Shown piece after piece: positions 2,043 to 52,354 of a DNA stretch of 64,000 nucleotides. The notes beneath the pieces were generated by a model. It was not told the DNA's origin. It saw nothing but the letters and a program-made list of their open reading frames with translations, and did no database searches. Position 1 is the first letter of the stretch, and each line of letters starts with the position of its first letter. The translations under genes and the position numbers were made by a program. This DNA is from Macrostomum hystrix (Eukaryota > Animalia > Platyhelminthes), in assembly GCA_950097015.1 (NCBI GenBank), contig CATNEN010000011.1, positions 3,038,001-3,102,000 of the forward strand. The letters are read 5' to 3'.

Positions 2043-3721
2043 GGCACTAGCTGTTAGCAACCGCAGCAGCGAAGTAAATTATGCTCATCCTAAACCTTGA
2101 AGTAAGGTGCTGACCAATTAAAATTTGGAGGGGCATCAAACGCAAACAGATTTCAAGGTTTCCTTGTCCCGCTTTCTGCTTTCGAATGTGAGTTATAACA
2201 AATTATGCTTTACCGTTAACTATACGTTTCTCAAATGAATTTTTACGTGCTTATAGTTTGTGTTTAAAATACCTTGCCTAACGAAGTGTTCTATAAAATA
2301 TAAACTTTGTCTCCATGATGTAACAGGAGTTGATTTATTCCTTATTATTTACTTTGCGATTTTTGATACACTTTAAACGTAGATAGACTTAAGTACAACT
2401 TGCTCTTAGGTATTATCATTATTTGCTCAAACAATTTCATACGTGTTTATTTATATTAGATAAAAAATATCTTTTTGTTTTAACGTAAGCCCGGAACTTT
2501 CTTCCAACAGTTGGTTGCACATCGTGCACGGATTAAACCAGGACTTGCTGAAAAGAATATTTTTGTGAAGGCATTGTCAATTGCAGATTCATAAGATTAT
2601 CACTGAAGTACTTACTATTCGCGTAGTTATAAAGTTGATTTATGGTGTTTCATTAACTTACCATAAATAAACTTTCTTTCTTAACTTTGAGTATCTAAAA
2701 AATAATTACAGATTTTTTTCTTGAAATCCAAATTAAAAAATATATATAAACTTTTGAAACATTTGAAACGTTCTAAAAATGCAATTAGTGAATTCTATTA
2801 GGCCTTGTATTAATTAAAATAATTGTATCTTTGATAAATAAAATGGATTTTTATCTTCAAATGACATTAAAACAGAGTCTAATTCACGTCATATACGTCA
2901 TATAGTTAAGAAAACCACCAGATTCCAAGAAAAAACGAAAAAATTGCTTTAAAATCTTAAATTAAGCTACATAAACAAAAGCGACTATATAAATTGCCAA
3001 TGCCTGATAGCCGTAGGACTTTTTATTTTATTTTTTGAAAATTTTTCGTGTACCTTGCATGTTTTATTTGTATGTAGTATTGCGCAACAAAGTTAGCTGC
3101 TAAATTTGATGCATATTGACCTCAATTTAGTACACAATTTCTATGAACTTAAAGTCTTATTAGTGATAAAAATGCGAAAATGTTACCTATAATCGGACTC
3201 ACTGCTGCATGCGCGATCAGTATCAGATTCTTGTCATTTTTTTACTTTTTAGTAAAAACACTTCAGTCAGCTTTCGTCGATGCCTATTTTGTAGTAATTG
3301 CATGCGTAAGAAAGTCACTCTTCTAAAAAAATAGTTGCTCATTTAAATATTTTACATAACCAGTAACTTTTATTTATAACAAAAGTGTTAAAAAACTGCG
3401 TGATCACGTTATGGCTTTAAATTCTGATGCTTTCTTTTTCTGCGCCGTTAATTGAATACAAAAGCTTTAAAAATTGATCGAATGCAAAATAGTATTGATT
3501 TGTTTTTTAAGACTATATTATATCGTTCGTTTTATAGTAATTTTCAATGATTAGCAACTTGAGTAAATATTTGAATAAATATAAATGAGTCCATTGAGTT
3601 ACTAATAAGAGTCTGTGGATTACCAATTAATGTCTGTTAATCACTGATGCGACTGCGAAAAATAACGAGAAACTGTGAATTTACAGTCTGAGCCAATGAA
3701 CTAACAATGAGTCTAAATAAT

Positions 3722-9967: not shown

Positions 9968-10008
9968 GTTTGATTCCTATGTTTTTGTGGGTTTAAACCT
10001 CAATTAAC

Positions 10009-11462
10009 TGGTGACGCCCATGTCTAACAGCTGACACCCATGTCTAACAGGTGACACCCATGTCTAACAGGTGACGCCCATGTCTAACAGGTGACACCCA
10101 TGTCTAACAGGTGACACCCATGTCTAACAGGTGATAACAATCTCTAACAGGTGACACCCATGTCTAACAGGTGACACCCATGTCTAACAGGTGACACCCA
10201 TGTCTAACAGGTGACACCTATGTCTAACAGGTGATAACAATATCTAGCAGGTGACGCCCATGTCTAACAGGTGACACCCATGTCTAACAGGTGACGCCCA
10301 TGTCTAACAGGTGACACCCATGTCTAACAGGTGACGCCCATGTCTAACAGGTGACGCCCATGTCTAACAGGTGACACCCATGTCTAACAGGTGACACCTA
10401 TGTCTAACAGGTGATAACAATATCTAGCAGGTGACGCCCATGTCCAACAGGTGACACCCATGTCTAACAGGTGACGCCCATGTCTAACAGGTGACACCCA
10501 TGTCTAACAGGTGACACCCATGTCTAACAGGTGACACCCATGTCTAACAGCTGACACCCATGTCTAACAGGTGACACCCATGTCTAACAGGTGACACCCA
10601 TGTCTAACAGGTGACGCCCATGTCTAACAGGTGACACCCATGTCTAACAGGTGACACCCATGTCTAACAGGTGATAACAATCTCTAACAGGTGACACCCA
10701 TGTCTAACAGGTGACACCCATGTCTAACAGGTGACACCCATGTCTAACAGGTGACACCTATGTCTAACAGGTGATAACAATATCTAGCAGGTGACGCCCA
10801 TGTCTAACAGGTGACACCCATGTCTAACAGGTGACGCCCATGTCTAACAGGTGACACCCATGTCTAACAGGTGACACCCATGTCTAACAGGTGACACCCA
10901 TGTCTAACAGGTGACACCCATGTCTAACAGGTGACACCCATGTCTAACAGGTGACACCCATGTCTAACAGGTGACGCCCATGTCTAACAGGTGACACCCA
11001 TGTCTAACAGGTGACACCCATGTCTAACAGGTGACACCCATGTCTAACAGGTGACGCCTATGTCTAACAGGTGACACCCATGTCTAACAGGTGACGCCCA
11101 TGTCTAACAGGTGACACCCATGTCTAACAGGTGACATGGCCATGCCTAACAGGTGACACCCATGTCTAACAGGTGACACCCATGTCTAACAGGTGACATG
11201 GCCATGTCTAACAGGTGACACCCATGTCTAACAGGTGACGCCCATGTCTAACAGGTGACACCCATGTCTAACAGGTGACACCCATGTCTAACAGGTGACA
11301 CCCATGTCTAACAGGTGAAGCCCATGTCTAACAGGTGACACCCATGTCTAACAGGTGACAACCATGTCTAACAGGTGACACCCATGTCTAACAGGTGACA
11401 CCCATGTCTAACAGGTGACACCCATGTCTAACAGGTGACATGGCCATGCCTAACAGGTGATA
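10009..11462. repeat. 20-bp minisatellite (AMN intron 2) with a 540-bp higher-order duplication
   Basis: Unit CAGGTGACACCCATGTCTAA, about 70 copies. Confidence 0.98.
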
Positions 11463-11537
11463 CCCTACAAATAGGTAAACATTTATTTTGTACTGTCAGT
11501 TGCAAGAAATTAATAACAATTGTTTTCTAAACTTCAG

Positions 11538-41996: not shown

Positions 41997-44146
41997 TCTA
42001 ATTCACCTGTTCCTAGATTAGACTAGTTCACCTGTTCCTAGATTAGACTAGTTCACCTGTTCCTAGATTAGACTAGTTCACCTGTTCCTAGATTAGACTA
42101 GTTCACCTGTTCCTAGATTAGACTAGTTCACCTGTTCCTAGATTAGACTAGTTCACCTGTTCCTAGATTAGACTAGTTCACCTGTTCCTAGATTAGACTA
42201 GTTCACCTGTTCCTAGATTAGACTAGTTCACCTGTTCCTAGATTAGACTAGTTCACCTGTTAGATACAGACTAGTTCAGCTGTTAGATACAGACCAGTTC
42301 ACTTGTTAGATACAGACTAGTTCACCTGTTAGATACAGACTAGTTCACATGTTAGATACAGACCAGTTCACTTGTTAGATACAGACTAGTTCACCTGTTA
42401 GATACAGACTAGTTCACCTGATAGATACAGACCAGTTCACCTGTTCCTAGATTAGACTAGTTCACCTGTTCCTAGATTAGACTAGTTCACCTGTTAGATA
42501 CAGACCAGTTCACTTGTTAGATACAGACTAGTTCACCTGATAGATACAGACCAGTTCACCTGTTCCTAGATTAGACTAGTTCACCTGTTCCTAGATTAGA
42601 CTAGTTCACCTGTTCCTAGATTAGACTAGTTCACCTGTTAGATACAGACCAGTTCACTTGTTAGATACAGACTAGTTCACCTGATAGATACAGACCAGTT
42701 CACCTGTTCCTAGATTAGACTAGTTCACCTGTTCCTAGATTAGACTAGTTCACCTGTTCCTAGATTAGACTAGTTCACCTGTTCCTAGATTAGACTAGTT
42801 CACCTGTTCCTAGATTAGACTAGTTCACCTGTTCCTAGATTAGACTAGTTCACCTGTTAGATACAGACCAATTCACTTGTTAGATACAGACTAGTTCACC
42901 TGTTAGATACAGACTAGTTCACCTGTTAGATACAGACCAGTTCACTTGTTAGATACAGACTAGTTCACCTGTTAGATACAGACTAGTTCACTTGTTAGAT
43001 ACAGACTAGTTCACCTGTTAGATACAGACTAGTTTACCCGTTAGATACAGACCAGTTCACTTGTTAGATACAGACTAGTTTACCAGTTAGATACAGACCA
43101 GTTCACTTGTTAGATACAGATTAATTCACCTGTTAGATACAGAACAGTTGACCTGTTAAATACAGACTGTTAGATACAGACTAGTTCACTTGTTAGATAC
43201 AGACTAGTTCAGCTGTTAGATACAGACTAGTTCACCTGTTAGATGATTAGTTCACTTGTTAGATACAGAGTAGTCACCTGTTAGATACAGACTGTTAGAT
43301 ACAGACTAGTTCACTTGTTAGATACAGACTAGTTGACCTGTTAGATACAGACTAGTTCACCTGATAGATACAGACTAGTTGACCTGTTAGATACAGACTA
43401 GTTCACTTGTTAGATACAGACTAGTTCACCTGATAGATACAGACTAGTTGACCTGTTAGATACAGACTGTTAGATACAGACTAGTTCACTTGTTAGATAC
43501 ATACTAGTTCACTTGTTAGATACAGACTAGTTCACCTGTTAGATACAGACTAGTTCACCTGATAGATACAGACCAGTTCACCTGTTAGATACAGACTAGT
43601 TCACCTGTTAGATACAGACTAGTTCACCTGTTAGATGCAGACTAGTTCACCTGTTAGATACAGACTAGTTCACCTGTTAGATACAGACTAGTTCACCTGA
43701 TAGATACAGACCAGTTCACCTGTTAGATACAGACCAGTTCACCTGTTAGATACAGACTAGTTCACCTGTTAGATGCAGACTAGTTCACCTGTTAGATACA
43801 GACTAGTTCACCTGATAGATACAGACCAGTTCACCTGTTAGATACAGAGTAGTTACCTGTTAGATACAGACTAGTTCACCTGTTAGATGATTAGTTCACT
43901 TGTTAGATACAGAGTAGTCACCTGTTAGATACAGACTGTTAGATACAGACTAGTTCACTTGTTAGATACAGACTAGTTGACCTGTTAGATACAGACTAGT
44001 TGACCTGTTAGATACAGACTAGTTCACCTGTTAGATACAGACTAGTTCACCTGTTAGATACAGACTAATTCACATGTTAGATACAGACTAGTTCACCTGA
44101 TAGATACAGACCAGTTCACCTGTTAGATACAGACTAGTTCACCTGT
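41997..44146. repeat. 25/23-bp satellite
   Basis: Units GACTAGTTCACCTGTTCCTAGATTA and GACTAGTTCACCTGTTAGATACA. Confidence 0.98.
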
Positions 44147-45240: not shown

Positions 45241-45533
45241 ATGAGGATTAAGCAGCTAAATCCCGGCTTGTCGTCTGAGCAGCAGCAGGAGCAGCAGCAG
45301 CAGCAGCAGCAGCAGCGGCAGTTTCTGTCCCAAGCAATGCTTCAGAATTCTCAGAGGCAGCACCTGCACTACCAGCAGTTCTCTGCTTCCCAGCTAGTTT
45401 CCGGTTATCTTTCGGAAGCAGCAACAAGCGGTGTGCATCAGCAGCCTCCAGGGCAGAATTTCCTTCACATTCTGCCGCCACCGCCTCTGCTGACAGAGCA
45501 GCAGCAGCAGCAGCAGCAGCAGCTAACAGCGAT
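45241..45533 (+). CDS. C2H2 zinc-finger transcription factor, putative exon 1 (polyQ/Pro-rich); start uncertain
   Basis: MRIKQLNPG...polyQ...PPPP...polyQ. Donor GCGAT|gtaaat, phase 2, is compatible with acceptor 46238. An in-frame stop lies upstream at 45208-45210. Confidence 0.55.
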
Positions 45534-45619
45534 GTAAATCAGATTTGTAGAATTGTGTCTTTCAAAACCAACAGTATCTGAATTACGTATTGCAGAAGAA
45601 ATTGCAGTTCGAATAATTC

Positions 45620-46168
45620 AAGGAACCGCAGCAGGAACAGTAGAAGGAATCACATTTGAAAAGTTAGAAGAATCGCAGCAGAAGCAGGAGTAGTAGAAAT
45701 CGCAGCACGAATGGTGGAAAGAATCGCAGAAGGAACAATAGAAGGAATCGCAGCAGGAACAGTGGAAGGAATAGCAGCAGGAATGGTAGAAGGAATCGAA
45801 GTAGGAACGGTGGAAAGAATCGCAGCAGGAACAGTAGAAGGAATCGCAGCAGGAACAGTAGAAGGAATCGCAGCAGGAATAGTAGAAGGAATCGCAACAG
45901 GAACAGTAGAAGGAATCGCAGCAGGAACAGTAGAAGAAATCGCAGCAGGAACAGTAGAAGGAATCGCAATAGGAACAGTAGAAGGAATCGCAGCAGGAAC
46001 AGTAGAAGAAATCGCAACGGTAACTGTAGAAGGAATCGCAGCAGGAACAGTAGAAGGAATCGCAGCAGGAACAGTAGAAGGAATCGCAGCAGGAACAGTA
46101 GGAGTTAAAGCAGAAACAGCGGAACATTTGAAGGAATCGAAGCAGGAACAGTAGAAGGAATCGCAGTA
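45620..46168 (+). repeat. 24-bp minisatellite, arm A (zinc-finger intron 1)
   Basis: Unit GAAGGAATCGCAGCAGGAACAGTA, about 22 copies. Confidence 0.96.
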
Positions 46169-46237
46169 GAAATCGAAGCAATAATCGCATCGATCAATCC
46201 AAAGGAGTATTTATCAGTTTGTCCCACTAATTTGCAG

Positions 46238-46521
46238 CGGCTGCCCCACGAATCCCGGAGAGCTGCCCTGTCTATTGAGTCATCAGCCGTCCCAACAATC
46301 GCCAAATCCACCGTGCCATCTGTGTGGCAAGGATTTTCGACTTGAAAAAAATCGTCTTAAACACCTGACTAAAGCGCATGGAGTAACTGCTGCTGCTGCT
46401 GCTGTTGCTGCTGCGGTCAACACGACACGACACAAGTCCGAGTCCGTACTCAAGTGCAAACTGTGCTCGTATATCACAAAGCACTACAGCAATATGTACG
46501 TGCACATTAGAACTCACACCG
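46238..46521 (+). CDS. C2H2 zinc-finger transcription factor, exon 2 (fingers 1 and 2)
   Basis: Acceptor tttgcag|C, phase 2. CHLCGKDFRLEKNRLKHLTKAH, a poly-Ala spacer, then CKLCSYITKHYSNMYVHIRTHT. Donor ACCG|gtaaga, phase 1. Confidence 0.88.
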
Positions 46522-46554
46522 GTAAGAATTGAGTACCATTGGCTAATAAGTTCC

Positions 46555-47490
46555 ACTGTTCCTGCTGCGATTCCTTCTACTGTGCCTGCTGCGATTCCTT
46601 CTACTGTTCCTGCTGCGATTCCTTCTACTGTTCCTGCTGCGATTCCTTCTACTGTGCCTGCTGCGATTCCTTCTACTGTTCCTGCTGCGATTCCTTCTAC
46701 TGTGCCTGCTGCGATTCCTTCTACTGTTCCTGCTGCGATTCCTTCTTTTGTTCCTGCTGCGATTCCTTCTACTGTTCCTATTGCGATTCCTTCTACTGTT
46801 CCTGCTGCGATTCCTTCTACTGTTCCTATTGCGATTCATTCTACTGTGCCTGCTTCGATTCCTTCTACTGTTCCTGCTTCGATTCCTTCTACTGTTCCTA
46901 TTGCGATTCATTCTACTGTTCCTATTGCGATTCCTTCTACTGTTCCTGCTGCGATTCCTTCTACTGTTCCTATTGCGATTCATTCTACTGTGCCTGCTGC
47001 GATTCCTTCTACTGTTCCTGCTGCGATTCCTTCTACTGTTCCTATTGCGATTCATTCTACTGTGCCTGCTGCGATTCCTTCTACTGTTCCTGCTGCGATT
47101 CCTTCTACTGTTCCTATTGCGATTCATTCTACTGTGCCTGCTGCGATTCCTTCTACTGTTCCTGCTGCGATTCCTTCTACTGTTCCTGCTGCGATTCCTT
47201 CTACTGTTCCTGCTGCGATTCCTTCTACTGTTCCTGCTGCGATTCCTTCTACTGTTCCTGCTGCGATTCCTTCTACTGTTCCTGCTGCGATTCCTTCTAC
47301 TGTTCCTGCTGCGATTCCTTCTACTGTTCCTGCTGCGATTCCTTCTACTGTTCCTGCTGCGATTCCTTCCACCATTCCTGCTGTGATTCCTTCTACTGTT
47401 CCTGCTGCGATTCCTTCCACCATTCCTGCTGTGATTCCTTCTACTGTTCCTGCTGCGATTCCTTCAAATGTTCCGCTGTTTCTGCTTTAA
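46555..47490 (-). repeat. 24-bp minisatellite, arm B, inverted relative to arm A (zinc-finger intron 2)
   Basis: Unit TACTGTTCCTGCTGCGATTCCTTC is the exact reverse complement of the arm A unit; about 39 copies. Confidence 0.97.
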
Positions 47491-47970
47491 ATCCTTCTAC
47501 ATTTCCGATAAGTTATGAGTTAATTCTTGCTCAAAATATTGTGAGATTTCTGAAGCAGGATTTTTGGATATGCTGTAGCAGTATCGAATTTGAATGGCGT
47601 GCACCATGTGGGACTCACTGTATGTTTGTAAAATAGCTCGTACATAAAGAGAATTTACATCAGTTTCCTTACAAATTCACAAGTCAAAGAGATTTAGTGT
47701 CATACGACAAAAAGGATTCGATCTCAGAGTTTGAGTCTATCTACAAGATCGACTATTTAATGCTATTTGATACAACACCCCGCTTTTTATGTAGAATGCA
47801 CATTTGCAGAATAAATATTTGATAAAATTGTGAGCTTGAGGCAAAATCGACTGCTAAAACTAATTGCGCAATTCTAAGTAAGAAGGAAAAATCAAGAAAA
47901 ATGCTTTCGTGCGCGCGTCCGTTGAACAGCTAAAGTTGATTCAGAGCTTCTGCATAAAGGAAGGAAGAAA

Positions 47971-48346
47971 TGCAGCAGGAGAGGTAGAAGGAATCGAAGG
48001 AGAGGTAGAAGGAATCGAAGGAGAGGTAGAAGGAATCGAAGGAGAGGTAGAAGGAATCGAAGGAGAGGTAGAAGGACTCGAAGGAGAGGTAGAAGGACTC
48101 GAAGGAGAGGTAGAAGAAATCGAAGGAGAGTTAGAAGGAATCGAAGGAGAGGTAGAAGGAATCGAAGGAGAGGTAGAAGGAATCGAAGGAGAGGTAGAAG
48201 GAATCGCAGGAGAGGTAGAAGGAATCGAAGGAGAGGTAGAAGGAATCACAGGAGAGGTTGAATGAATCGAAGGAGAGGTAGAAGGAATCGCAGGAGAGGT
48301 AGAAGGAATCGCAGGAGAGGTAGAAGGAATCACAGGAGAGGTTGAA
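47971..48346 (+). repeat. 21-bp minisatellite, arm C, related to arm A (zinc-finger intron 2)
   Basis: Unit GAGGTAGAAGGAATCGAAGGA shares GTAGAAGGAATCG with arm A. Confidence 0.95.
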
Positions 48347-48396
48347 TGAATCGTCTCAGAATACACAGGGTGAGAATGTACATTTACAGTGTGCTT

Positions 48397-48806
48397 TTGT
48401 ACATCTAGTGTTTACTTATGAACATCTAGTGTGTGCTTATGTACATCTAGTGTTTACTTATGAACATCTAGTGTGTGCTTATGTACATCTAGTGTTTACT
48501 TATGTACACCTAGTGTGTGGTTATGTACATCTAGTGTGTGGCGCTCGTACACCTAGTGTGTGGTTATGTACATCTAGTGTGTGGCGCTCGTACATCTAGT
48601 GTGTGGTTATGTACATCTAGTGTGTGGCGCTCGTACATCTAGTGTGTGGTTATGTACATCTAGTGTGTGGCGCTCGTACATCTAGTGTGTGGTTATGTAC
48701 ATCTAGTGTGTGGTTATGTACATCTAGTATGTGGTTATGTACATCTAGTGTGTGGTTATGTACATGTGTGTGGTTATGTACATCTAGTGTGTGCTTATGT
48801 ACATCT
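48397..48806. repeat. 21/22-bp minisatellite just upstream of the zinc-finger exon-3 acceptor
   Basis: Unit TGTACATCTAGTGTGTGGTTA. Confidence 0.94.
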
Positions 48807-48844
48807 AAAGTTTGTGATTCTCAGTTCCGATCTCGCGTTCGCAG

Positions 48845-49428
48845 GCGACAAGCCGTACTGGTGCGGAGGCTGCGGCGCCTCCTTCACGCAGGGCAGCTCT
48901 CTGAAGCTGCACATCCGCAGTCGGCATCAGGACAACATGGCTTATTTCTCGCTTAATAAGAAGTTGGGCAAGAACAATCTGACTCGCTTGTGGCAACGAG
49001 TACTACGTTACGAGCGAGTCGGGACTAGCGACATTGGCGATATGAATCAGCAGCAGCAGCAGCGGCAAGACTCTCTTCTGCTACTAGGAGCAGTGAAGAC
49101 TGAACAGGGGGACGCCGAAACAAAGTCTTCTGGGGCGGAGGTTTGCGAACGATCCACTATGACGGAGATTCACGGAGACCTGTTGCCGTCAACTCTGCTG
49201 CAGCAACAGGGGACCACACCGCTGAGCCAACTGGCAGTCGAGAACCAAAGACTTCGGATTGAGCTGCGAGAGGCTCGACAGACGGCTGCCCGGCTCCTGA
49301 CTGCCGCGTTCGCTCAACTGCCGGCCACGTCGTCCGGACAGCAGGGCGGAGCTGGAGGCAGCTTCAGCAGGTTTCTAGGCCTTCCGCAGCAACTGCAGCA
49401 GCAACAGCAGCAGCAGCAGCAGCAGTGA
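48845..49428 (+). CDS. C2H2 zinc-finger transcription factor, exon 3 (finger 3 and C-terminus)
   Basis: Acceptor ttcgcag|GC, phase 1, completes the TGDKPY linker. Then CGGCGASFTQGSSLKLHIRSRH, the segment DNMAYFSLNKKLGKNNLTRLWQRVL, a coiled-coil-like stretch and terminal polyQ. Stop TGA at 49426-49428. Confidence 0.9.
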
Positions 49429-49547: not shown

Positions 49548-51273
49548 TCAGACAAGAATCTGACCTGTTAGACAAGAATCTGACCTGTTAGACAAGAATC
49601 TGACCTGTTAGACAAGAAATTCAAATGTAATTTGATTATAGCCGTATTAGGATGTTTTGTAGACCTAGTATTTTTTTTAAACATTTTGTGCAAATAAAAA
49701 ACATACAATACATCCATGAAGAAATCAAACATTATTGTTCATAATCTCCTCTAAACCATTGTTAATCACAAATTGGTAACGACATTTAGGCGAATACCAA
49801 TGTACTCAAATTAATTGATAAATTAATGTTCTGAAATATATTCTAGTAAATTAGAAAACATTCAGTTCTCTTTTCTGATATTTTCTTTACGACAATATGA
49901 CGTTTTAAAAAATGATCTTGCATGTTAGACAAGAATCTGACCTGTTAGACAAGAATCTGACCTGTTCGACAAGAATCTAACCTGTTAGACAATAATCTGA
50001 CATGTTAGACAAGAAGCTGACCTGTTAGACAAGAATCTGACATGTTAGACAATAATCTAACCTGTTAGACAAGAATCTGAAATGTTCGACAAGAATCTAA
50101 CCTGTTAGACAAGAATCTGACATGTTAGACAAGAAGCTGACCTGTTAGACAAGAATCTGACCTGTTAGACAAGCATCTGACATGTTAGACAATAATCTGA
50201 CATGTTAGACAAGAAGCTGACCTGTTAGACAAGAATCTGACCTGTTAGACAAGCATCTGACATGTTAGACAATAATCTAACCTGTTAGACAAGAATCTGA
50301 CATGTTAGACAAGAAGCTGACATGTTAGACAATAATCTAACCTGTTAGACAAGAAGCTGACATGTTAGACAATAATCTAACCTGTTAGACAAGAATCTGA
50401 CATGTTAGACAAGAATCTGACCTGTTAGACAAGAATCTGACATGTTAGACAAGAATCTGACCTGTTAGACAAGAATCTGACATGTTAGACAAGAATCTGA
50501 CATGTTAGACAAGAATCTGACCTGTTAGACAAGAATCTGACATGTTAGACAATAATCTAACCTGTTAGACAAGAATCTGAAATGTTCGACAAGAATCTAA
50601 CCTGTTAGACAAGAATCTGACATGTTAGACAAGAATCTGACCTGTTAGACAAGAATCTGACATGTTAGACAAGAATCTGACCTGTTAGACAAGCATCTGA
50701 CATGTTAGACAATAATCTGACATGTTAGACAAGAAGCTGACCTGTTAGACAAGAATCTGACCTGTTAGACAAGCATCTGACATGTTAGACAATAATCTAA
50801 CCTGTTAGACAAGAATCTGACATGTTAGACAAGAAGCTGACATGTTAGACAATAATCTAACCTGTTAGACAAGAAGCTGACATGTTAGACAATAATCTAA
50901 CCTGTTAGACAAGAATCTGACATGTTAGACAAGAATCTGACCTGTTAGACAAGAATCTGACATGTTAGACAATAATCTAACCTGTTAGACAAGAATCTGA
51001 CATGTTAGACAAGAATCTGACCTGTTAGACAAGAATCTGACATGTTAGACAAGAAGCTGACATGTTAGACAATAATCTAACCTGTTAGACAAGAAGCTGA
51101 CATGTTAGACAATAATCTGACCTGTTAGACAAGAATCTGACATGTTAGACAAGAAGCTGACATGTTAGACAATAATCTAACCTGTTAGACAAGAAGCTGA
51201 CCTGTTAGACAATAATCTAACCTGTTAGACAAGAAGCTGACCTGTTAGACAATAATCTAACCTGTTAGACAAG
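49548..51273. repeat. 20-bp minisatellite (3 units at about 49548-49617; main array 49920-51273)
   Basis: Unit GTTAGACAAGAATCTGAC(C/A)T; the rare variant AATGTTCGAC recurs at 50081 and 50581. Confidence 0.97.
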
Positions 51274-52354
51274 AACCTCACACTTAGATGCTGAGACTAA
51301 ACTCGTCAAGAAATTTTCTCCATCCAATACTGAATTTGAAAGCTTTGAACTCAAAGCTGAAATTCTTATGCAAATTAGTGCGCACACGCATACATACATA
51401 CAAAAACAAGACATACGCTAGTAAATATAAAATGCATATGTAGTGCATGTTTGCCAATGGTCTAATCCTGACCATATACGCGCGTATATTCTGAGTCTAG
51501 CTATCGTAGGCCTACATGAATAATTCATTTATCCATAACAAATGCCATTTATATTCACTGTGTGTAGACATTGCATTATAATAAATGACGATAATAAAAT
51601 TAATATTATACACGAATCTACAGCTACACAGATATATTAGCGATAGAAAGGGATAGAGAAGGAGAGAGATGGGAGAAGGAGAGGGTGTAACATAAAATTA
51701 GATAAACATGGAAAGCAATTTTTGTTAGTATAATGTAAGATCTGCTATACATACACTAGCACATATACATACATACGAATTTTAGTTTACTGGACTAGTA
51801 CACACGCCATTCGCAAAGCAGTCTGTTTTTTCGTTTGATAGTCATTCCCGTTGTGGAGAAATGAAATATTGAGGAGGAGGCCAGGTTGAGATGGGAGCAG
51901 GGACGAATGGATGTGGCTGAGTATGAACTCACATGTATATACATACATATCATAAGCTAGCTTATGACTCTAGACATAGGAAATCATTATTATTCATGTA
52001 GATATTAGAGATTGTATAATGCAAGCGGAACGTGCATTAGAAAACAGATCAGCTCTATGAGTGCTTGCCACTGACAACGATGTGTATAACCTTACTTAGA
52101 CTAAATTAGCATTGTAGATTTAGTTATAAGACGGCTAATTTATGAATATTTCGGCTAGTAATTTAAATATATAAAATATAAAAAGGCAGATCAGGACTAG
52201 AAGAAACGAATGGAGCTGGAAATTGAGGGAAGAGAGCTCGGAATGTAGGGAATTAAGGGTGATCAGGAAATGTAGGGAGTGAAGGGAGATTCGGAGATGT
52301 AGAGAATGAAGGGGGATGATGAATTAAAGACAATGAATATAGTTCAGGAAATGT

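Follow-up and report, generated by a model that had tools for sequence, protein, structure and literature searches.

What happens to a coding exon when the introns on its two sides carry arrays of short tandem repeats that are reverse complements of each other? This question is raised by a zinc-finger gene in a 64,000-nt stretch of the genome of the flatworm Macrostomum hystrix (assembly GCA_950097015.1, contig CATNEN010000011.1, positions 3,038,001 to 3,102,000 of the forward strand). This stretch is called here the window, and positions are counted from its first letter. The second exon of the gene lies between two minisatellite arrays, A in intron 1 and B in intron 2, and a third array, C, follows B within intron 2. 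The structure is real and well defined, its function is unproven, and its use as a three-arm switch is unsupported. The explanation that we favour, and regard as reasonably probable, is an inverted minisatellite duplication that was born locally. It would be constitutive, a by-product of the rapid turnover of arrays that is probably neutral or mildly costly, rather than an evolved switch.

The first step is the anatomy of the locus. C2H2 fingers 1 and 2 are encoded by exon 2 (46238..46521, forward strand), which has 284 nt and is in phase 1 at either end. The two-finger frame is its only open frame, and both of its borders are canonical (acceptor TTTGCAG/C, donor G/GTAAGA). Frame, borders and the match to PF00096 (E 2e-5, 25.2 bits, at the cut-off) all agree with the exon proposed in a preliminary description of this DNA. 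The arrays were called with Tandem Repeats Finder (TRF). Array A (45620-46166, forward strand) is purine-rich and has a period of 24 nt, with 22.5 copies and 80% matches; degenerate units continue to about 46185. Array B (46551-47478, reverse strand), at the start of intron 2, also has a period of 24 nt, with 38.7 copies and 91% matches, and shows a 72-nt higher-order pattern. The arms had been placed about 70 and 33 nt from the exon, and the measured distances are close to these values, 71 nt from A to the exon 2 acceptor and 29 nt from the end of exon 2 to B. Array C (47977-48353, forward strand), which has the orientation of A, consists of 18 copies of a 21-nt period with 94% matches. Its unit is the A unit minus 3 nt, and it is about 74% complementary to B.

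The arms were initially described as exact reverse complements. This holds for the consensus units of A and B, which are identical after rotation and reverse complementation, but not for the whole arms, which are 88-92% complementary over 424-436 nt and 88.6% over 572 nt. The longest perfect inverted match between them is 76 nt (46026-46101 versus 47273-47348). The reported kinship of C with A, and hence its complementarity to B, is borne out by the 13-mer GTAGAAGGAATCG, which has 11 exact copies in A, 27 in the reverse complement of B and 10 in C. As a separate observation on the DNA, recombination between A and B at their shared inverted match would invert exon 2.

Is this complementarity sufficient for a predicted structure in the RNA? 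The cofolding gain is -860 kcal/mol (525 bp) for A:B, -437 kcal/mol (354 bp) for B:C, and -7 kcal/mol for A:C. In controls with B reversed or shuffled the gain was -202 to -222 kcal/mol, and the control for B:C gave -217 kcal/mol. Thus, A:B gains about four times, and B:C about two times, what is expected from the pairing of purine-rich with pyrimidine-rich sequence of the same composition. The minimum-energy fold was taken over 3.5 kb of pre-mRNA (45400-48900). In this fold A (45628-46169) pairs with positions 46562-47096 of B through 485 bp, and C (47959-48331) simultaneously pairs with positions 47097-47498 of B through 309 bp. A long A:B duplex of about 485-525 bp that loops out the exon, as previously suggested, is therefore also what folding predicts. 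Masking of A costs 686 kcal/mol, and masking of C costs 285 kcal/mol. In the predicted geometry, the 5' end of A lies 86 nt past the exon 1 donor, and the 3' end of C lies about 510 nt ahead of the exon 3 acceptor.

In the mechanism that we propose, A and the proximal 22 units of B would zip into a stem of about 500 bp in the pre-mRNA, and a loop of about 390 nt would contain exon 2 together with its splice sites. C would be paired with the other 16 units of B, and the donor side of exon 1 would meet the acceptor side of exon 3 at a three-way junction. The order of transcription (A, the exon, B, C) means that kinetics favour the same fold.

The composition of the arrays is of interest apart from pairing. 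The 928 nt of array B contain no AG dinucleotides and are 74% pyrimidine. Arrays A and C are 74-82% purine and contain repeated GAAGGAA, a type of motif bound by serine/arginine-rich (SR-type) splicing factors. Proteins that bind the arrays could be as important as pairing of the RNA.

How did inverted arms come to bracket the exon? A record of their origin is provided by a 33-nt non-canonical segment, the marker, which occurs at the exon-proximal end of A (46107-46139, forward strand) and at the exon-distal end of B (47456-47488, reverse strand) with no mismatches. The homology around the marker extends over about 70 nt with 4 mismatches and then decays. No third copy of the marker was found in the 220-Mb genome by a pattern search allowing up to 3 mismatches. 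The 24-bp family itself is dispersed, occurring at 36 or more other loci with 75-88% identity and a different half-unit (GTAGCTA type). Arrays A, B and C have in common a unit variant with GTAGAAGG, whereas the other loci of the family are of the GTAGCTA type and at most 88% identical. All 18 of the other family loci examined have a single orientation. A marker that occurs only twice, a shared unit variant, and relatives in a single orientation together indicate that A, B and C form one local lineage.

Within this lineage B is, to judge from the marker and the shared units, an inverted copy made at the locus and later expanded; it is also the more homogeneous of the two arms. The order of events may have been either of two. 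Either the marker and a few units were copied together as a short inverted piece that subsequently expanded, or the whole array was copied and the marker was converted later. The 5' start of A weakly resembles the marker region.

Other accounts of the arms were rejected. A transposon or foldback origin does not agree with a marker unique to the locus or with the single orientation at the 18 other loci. Chance similarity of A and B is incompatible both with the marker that they have in common and with a duplex gain far beyond the controls. Nor was there a case for a coding role of the arrays, because the 24-bp unit is open in all frames by construction, and related loci with 25-bp periods break the frame.

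Is the bracketing of exon 2 exceptional for its surroundings? Minisatellite arrays make up 44% of the window, which contains 33 arrays with a period of at least 10. Both introns of the zinc-finger gene are about 75% array, and at each of its splice sites an array lies within 29-86 nt. One of these arrays is D (48376-48807, forward strand), a 21/43-bp minisatellite unrelated to A, B and C, which ends 37 nt before exon 3. Because arrays, including the unrelated D, abut every exon, to be clamped between arrays is the normal state of exons in this gene, and this argues for the by-product explanation. Array D also pairs with itself, with a monomer energy of -148 kcal/mol and 162 internal pairs in the full fold. 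Assembly-wide, 22.9% of the M. hystrix genome was assigned to repeats by RepeatMasker, and the genome paper leaves the nature of these repeats open (PMC10468722). For M. lignano, a content of 15% simple and tandem repeats was reported (PMC5730564).

The identity of the gene bears on what a disturbance of exon 2 would mean. The coding part of exon 1 (45241..45533, forward strand) begins with the ATG at 45241, comprises about 98 codons rich in polyglutamine (polyQ), and ends at the donor GT at 45534; a Pfam scan of this part yielded no family. Intron 1 occupies 45534-46237 and intron 2 occupies 46522-48844. Exon 3 (48845..49428, forward strand) encodes finger 3 and the C-terminal tail, with the stop codon at 49426-49428; its match to PF00096 (E 4.6e-4, 20.9 bits) does not reach the cut-off of 25.2. 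Read codon by codon, the junction of exons 1 and 2 is ...LTA-I-GCP..., and the junction of exons 2 and 3 is THTG-DKPY, the classic finger linker.

In the homology searches each exon was a separate query, and no spliced model was used. In trematodes, cestodes and a monogenean the exon 2 peptide finds matches in a single stretch, at 55-72% identity. For exon 3, identity to flatworm orthologues is 72-80% across finger 3 and the motif after it. Both peptide searches returned only flatworms other than Macrostomum, from a collection that may omit records of M. hystrix or its near relatives. Many flatworm gene models end just past THTG or begin at GDKPY (P0002, P0008, P0013, P0015, P0029, P0034 and others); automatic annotation in several flatworm species is evidently disrupted by the conserved intron that follows finger 2. 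A GTGAGA donor also stands exactly after THTG in the Logan contig L032, from a flatworm-like relative. The breaks in the gene models and this donor together indicate that the position of the intron is conserved across flatworms. Unlike M. hystrix, the L032 relative has no arrays beside the exon, although it is too distant for this to be informative.

Judging by these domains and matches, the gene is a three-finger C2H2 transcription-factor gene with orthologues across flatworms. With the flatworm proteins of this type, which bear the automatic name "zinc finger protein 333" in records of Echinococcus and Schistosoma, the M. hystrix protein has in common the block of fingers 1 and 2, the THTGDKPY linker, finger 3, the KNNLT.LW motif after finger 3, and the intron after THTG. 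It differs from them in its N-terminus, a short polyQ one, and in the Ala-rich stretch inserted between its first two fingers.

What would the stem do to the transcript? In contrast to the anatomy, the local origin, the thermodynamic prediction and the gene identity, every RNA outcome given here is one that we infer. Should the stem form in vivo, exon 2 would be expected to be back-spliced to some extent into a 284-nt circle, to be skipped to some extent, or both, because complementarity of flanking introns is known to drive circularisation. Flanking complementarity of more than 30-40 nt can be sufficient to drive it, and ADAR opposes it (reviewed in PMC5814467). Skipping of exon 2 would cause a frameshift and yield a finger-less peptide. 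The skip frame reads RQAVLV...GQHGLFLA, with the stop at 48954-48956 in exon 3, and so ends as given in the preliminary description, and the strings listed there for the back-splice and skip junctions match the sequence. The circle contains stops in two of its three frames and thus has no endless reading frame.

The A:B duplex would also be a possible target of ADAR or Dicer. At two loci of the genome (C9:212636-215438 and C2:4197903-4205264) dsrm lies directly upstream of A_deamin on the same strand, which is the ADAR layout. An enzyme of the ADAR type is thus plausible, and the duplex could in principle be edited. The third A_deamin locus, on C25, lacks dsrm in its vicinity and is perhaps ADAT1-like.

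Several considerations weigh against the by-product explanation. The stem may never form in vivo, since splicing during transcription, helicases or a coat of proteins could stand in its way. The neutral interpretation is drawn from context. So long a stem around an exon for conserved DNA-binding fingers should be costly, and that it has persisted, with about 6% divergence around the marker, could hint at mechanisms of tolerance or at use.

The first of these points leads to the alternative that survives best, although we consider it rather unlikely. Here the stem would have no consequences: either splicing removes intron 1 co-transcriptionally, or the arms are kept apart by helicases and RNA-binding proteins, so that the mRNA is normal and circles, skipped products and small RNAs do not rise above noise. 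Given the intact frames, canonical splice sites and conserved fingers, normal splicing must predominate, and in a genome filled with arrays the splicing machinery must be able to cope. Looped-out exons were reportedly found by Solnick and Lee in 1987 to be skipped far less in vivo than in vitro. On the other hand, B starts only 29 nt past the donor, and by the time B is transcribed A has already been made. Moreover, while 30-40 nt are enough for circles in other animals, the stem predicted here has about 500 bp and a gain of -860 kcal/mol.

A much broader proposition, to which we give little credence, is that intron-intron complementarity in Macrostomum comes mainly from minisatellites rather than from transposons. 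Exon-bracketing inverted arrays would then form a genome-wide class that drives circularisation or skipping, at levels set by copy number. If true, this would amount to heritable, fast-evolving tuning of isoforms, and at this locus of the dose of a conserved zinc-finger transcription factor.

Still less probable is a role of the locus as a source of hairpin RNA, in which Dicer would cut A:B and the resulting endogenous small interfering RNAs (endo-siRNAs) would act on their own pre-mRNA or on the dozens of transcripts with the 24-bp family. The predicted stem of about 500 bp with its 390-nt loop is within the size range of Drosophila hairpin RNA (hpRNA) loci, some of which are said, after the work of Okamura and of Czech in 2008, to be built from tandem repeats. 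Potential targets are provided by the 36 or more other loci of the family. However, their identity of 75-88% is low for siRNA targeting, an intronic hairpin would compete with splicing, and nothing marks this hairpin as beyond accident. Like the Drosophila loci, A:B is a long, near-perfect inverted repeat, partly of tandem units and transcribed by RNA polymerase II. Unlike them, it has its arms in two separate introns of a protein-coding gene, and the loop between the arms holds a coding exon.

The preliminary description had proposed a regulated switch. In it, exon 2 would be looped out or circularised by A:B pairing and released by B:C pairing, and the ratio would depend on copy number, as in a splicing rheostat based on a variable number of tandem repeats (VNTR). 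The geometry and the frames of this proposal are correct, and the copy number of arrays is intrinsically variable. Competition between cross-exon and within-intron pairs is a known principle in mammals, reportedly described by Zhang et al. in 2014. The competition itself does not appear in the fold, where both pairings are present at once. The 38.7 units of B leave room for A (22.5) as well as C (18), so C is additive rather than competitive: A and C hold separate halves of B, mutual exclusivity is not seen, and masking of C extends A:B by 41 bp, from 485 to 526 bp. In addition, A is transcribed before C, so that kinetics favour A:B. We therefore consider the switch very improbable.

Finally, an assembly artefact can hardly be the explanation. 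The inversion of B would then be a misjoin or a chimeric-read palindrome of the long-read assembly; array-rich sequence is hard to assemble, and the preliminary description had also considered a misassembly. However, the arms of a palindromic artefact would be near-identical, whereas A and B differ in length (547 versus 928 nt), homogeneity (80% versus 91%) and higher-order pattern and are about 89% complementary. The spacer between them, a conserved exon in the correct orientation, is unique, the structure of less than 2 kb is far shorter than the reads, and the assembly comprises 42 contigs from an inbred line with a reported quality value (QV) of 42.8 (PMC10468722).

How does the inverted duplication that we favour relate to known systems? 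In flanking complementarity, canonical splice sites and predicted cross-exon stability, the locus has the layout of circular RNA (circRNA) loci. Back-splicing is promoted via complementary flanking introns by inverted Alu pairs in mammals, by complementary matches in C. elegans, and by the short repeats of Drosophila laccase2. The M. hystrix locus resembles these systems in having complementarity in both introns, canonical sites, a short exon (284 nt) and a within-intron partner, C. It differs from Alu-type systems in that its arms are minisatellite arrays born at the locus rather than dispersed transposons, and they are 5-10 times longer than an Alu pair. The pairing register is free in steps of 24 nt, the within-intron partner is non-competing, and the system is known from sequence alone. 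Another parallel is provided by Foldback (FB) transposons, in which inverted arms of short tandem repeats likewise flank a central segment. Here, however, what lies between the arms is a conserved exon of the host at its proper position, and the marker is unique to the locus.

A search of the literature collection available returned nothing relevant on minisatellites with back-splicing or flanking introns, or on circular RNA in flatworms or Macrostomum. Complementary introns that loop out an exon are a known principle, whereas locally inverted minisatellite arms appear undescribed. If the stem forms and affects splicing, turnover of tandem repeats alone could create and readjust the RNA structures behind the choice between linear, skipped and circular products, without a transposon. 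Such an effect would also raise the question of how array-filled introns stay accurately spliced. If the stem has no effect, the locus is a clear example of an intron overwritten by repeats, with the exon and a few dozen flanking bases kept. Tools for transgenesis exist in a sister species of M. hystrix (PMC5730564).

Other repeat pairs were observed around the gene and elsewhere. Arrays 41998-44146 and 49550-51282, which flank the gene, have a ACCTGTTAGA core in common and are in direct orientation. A weak inverted pair of 20-bp arrays (10005-11465 and 49921-51282), 38 kb apart with 69.5% identity over about 1.4 kb, encloses the whole zinc-finger gene. Another inverted pair, formed by a 23-bp array related to C, was found outside the window in L012 (2210-3031 and 3616-5002; G000:C33:4132709-4135501). 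Its arms are about 89% complementary over 860 nt. The GC-rich spacer of 585 nt between them has an open frame as well as a donor-like GTGAGT near 3537, and it may be a further bracketed exon.

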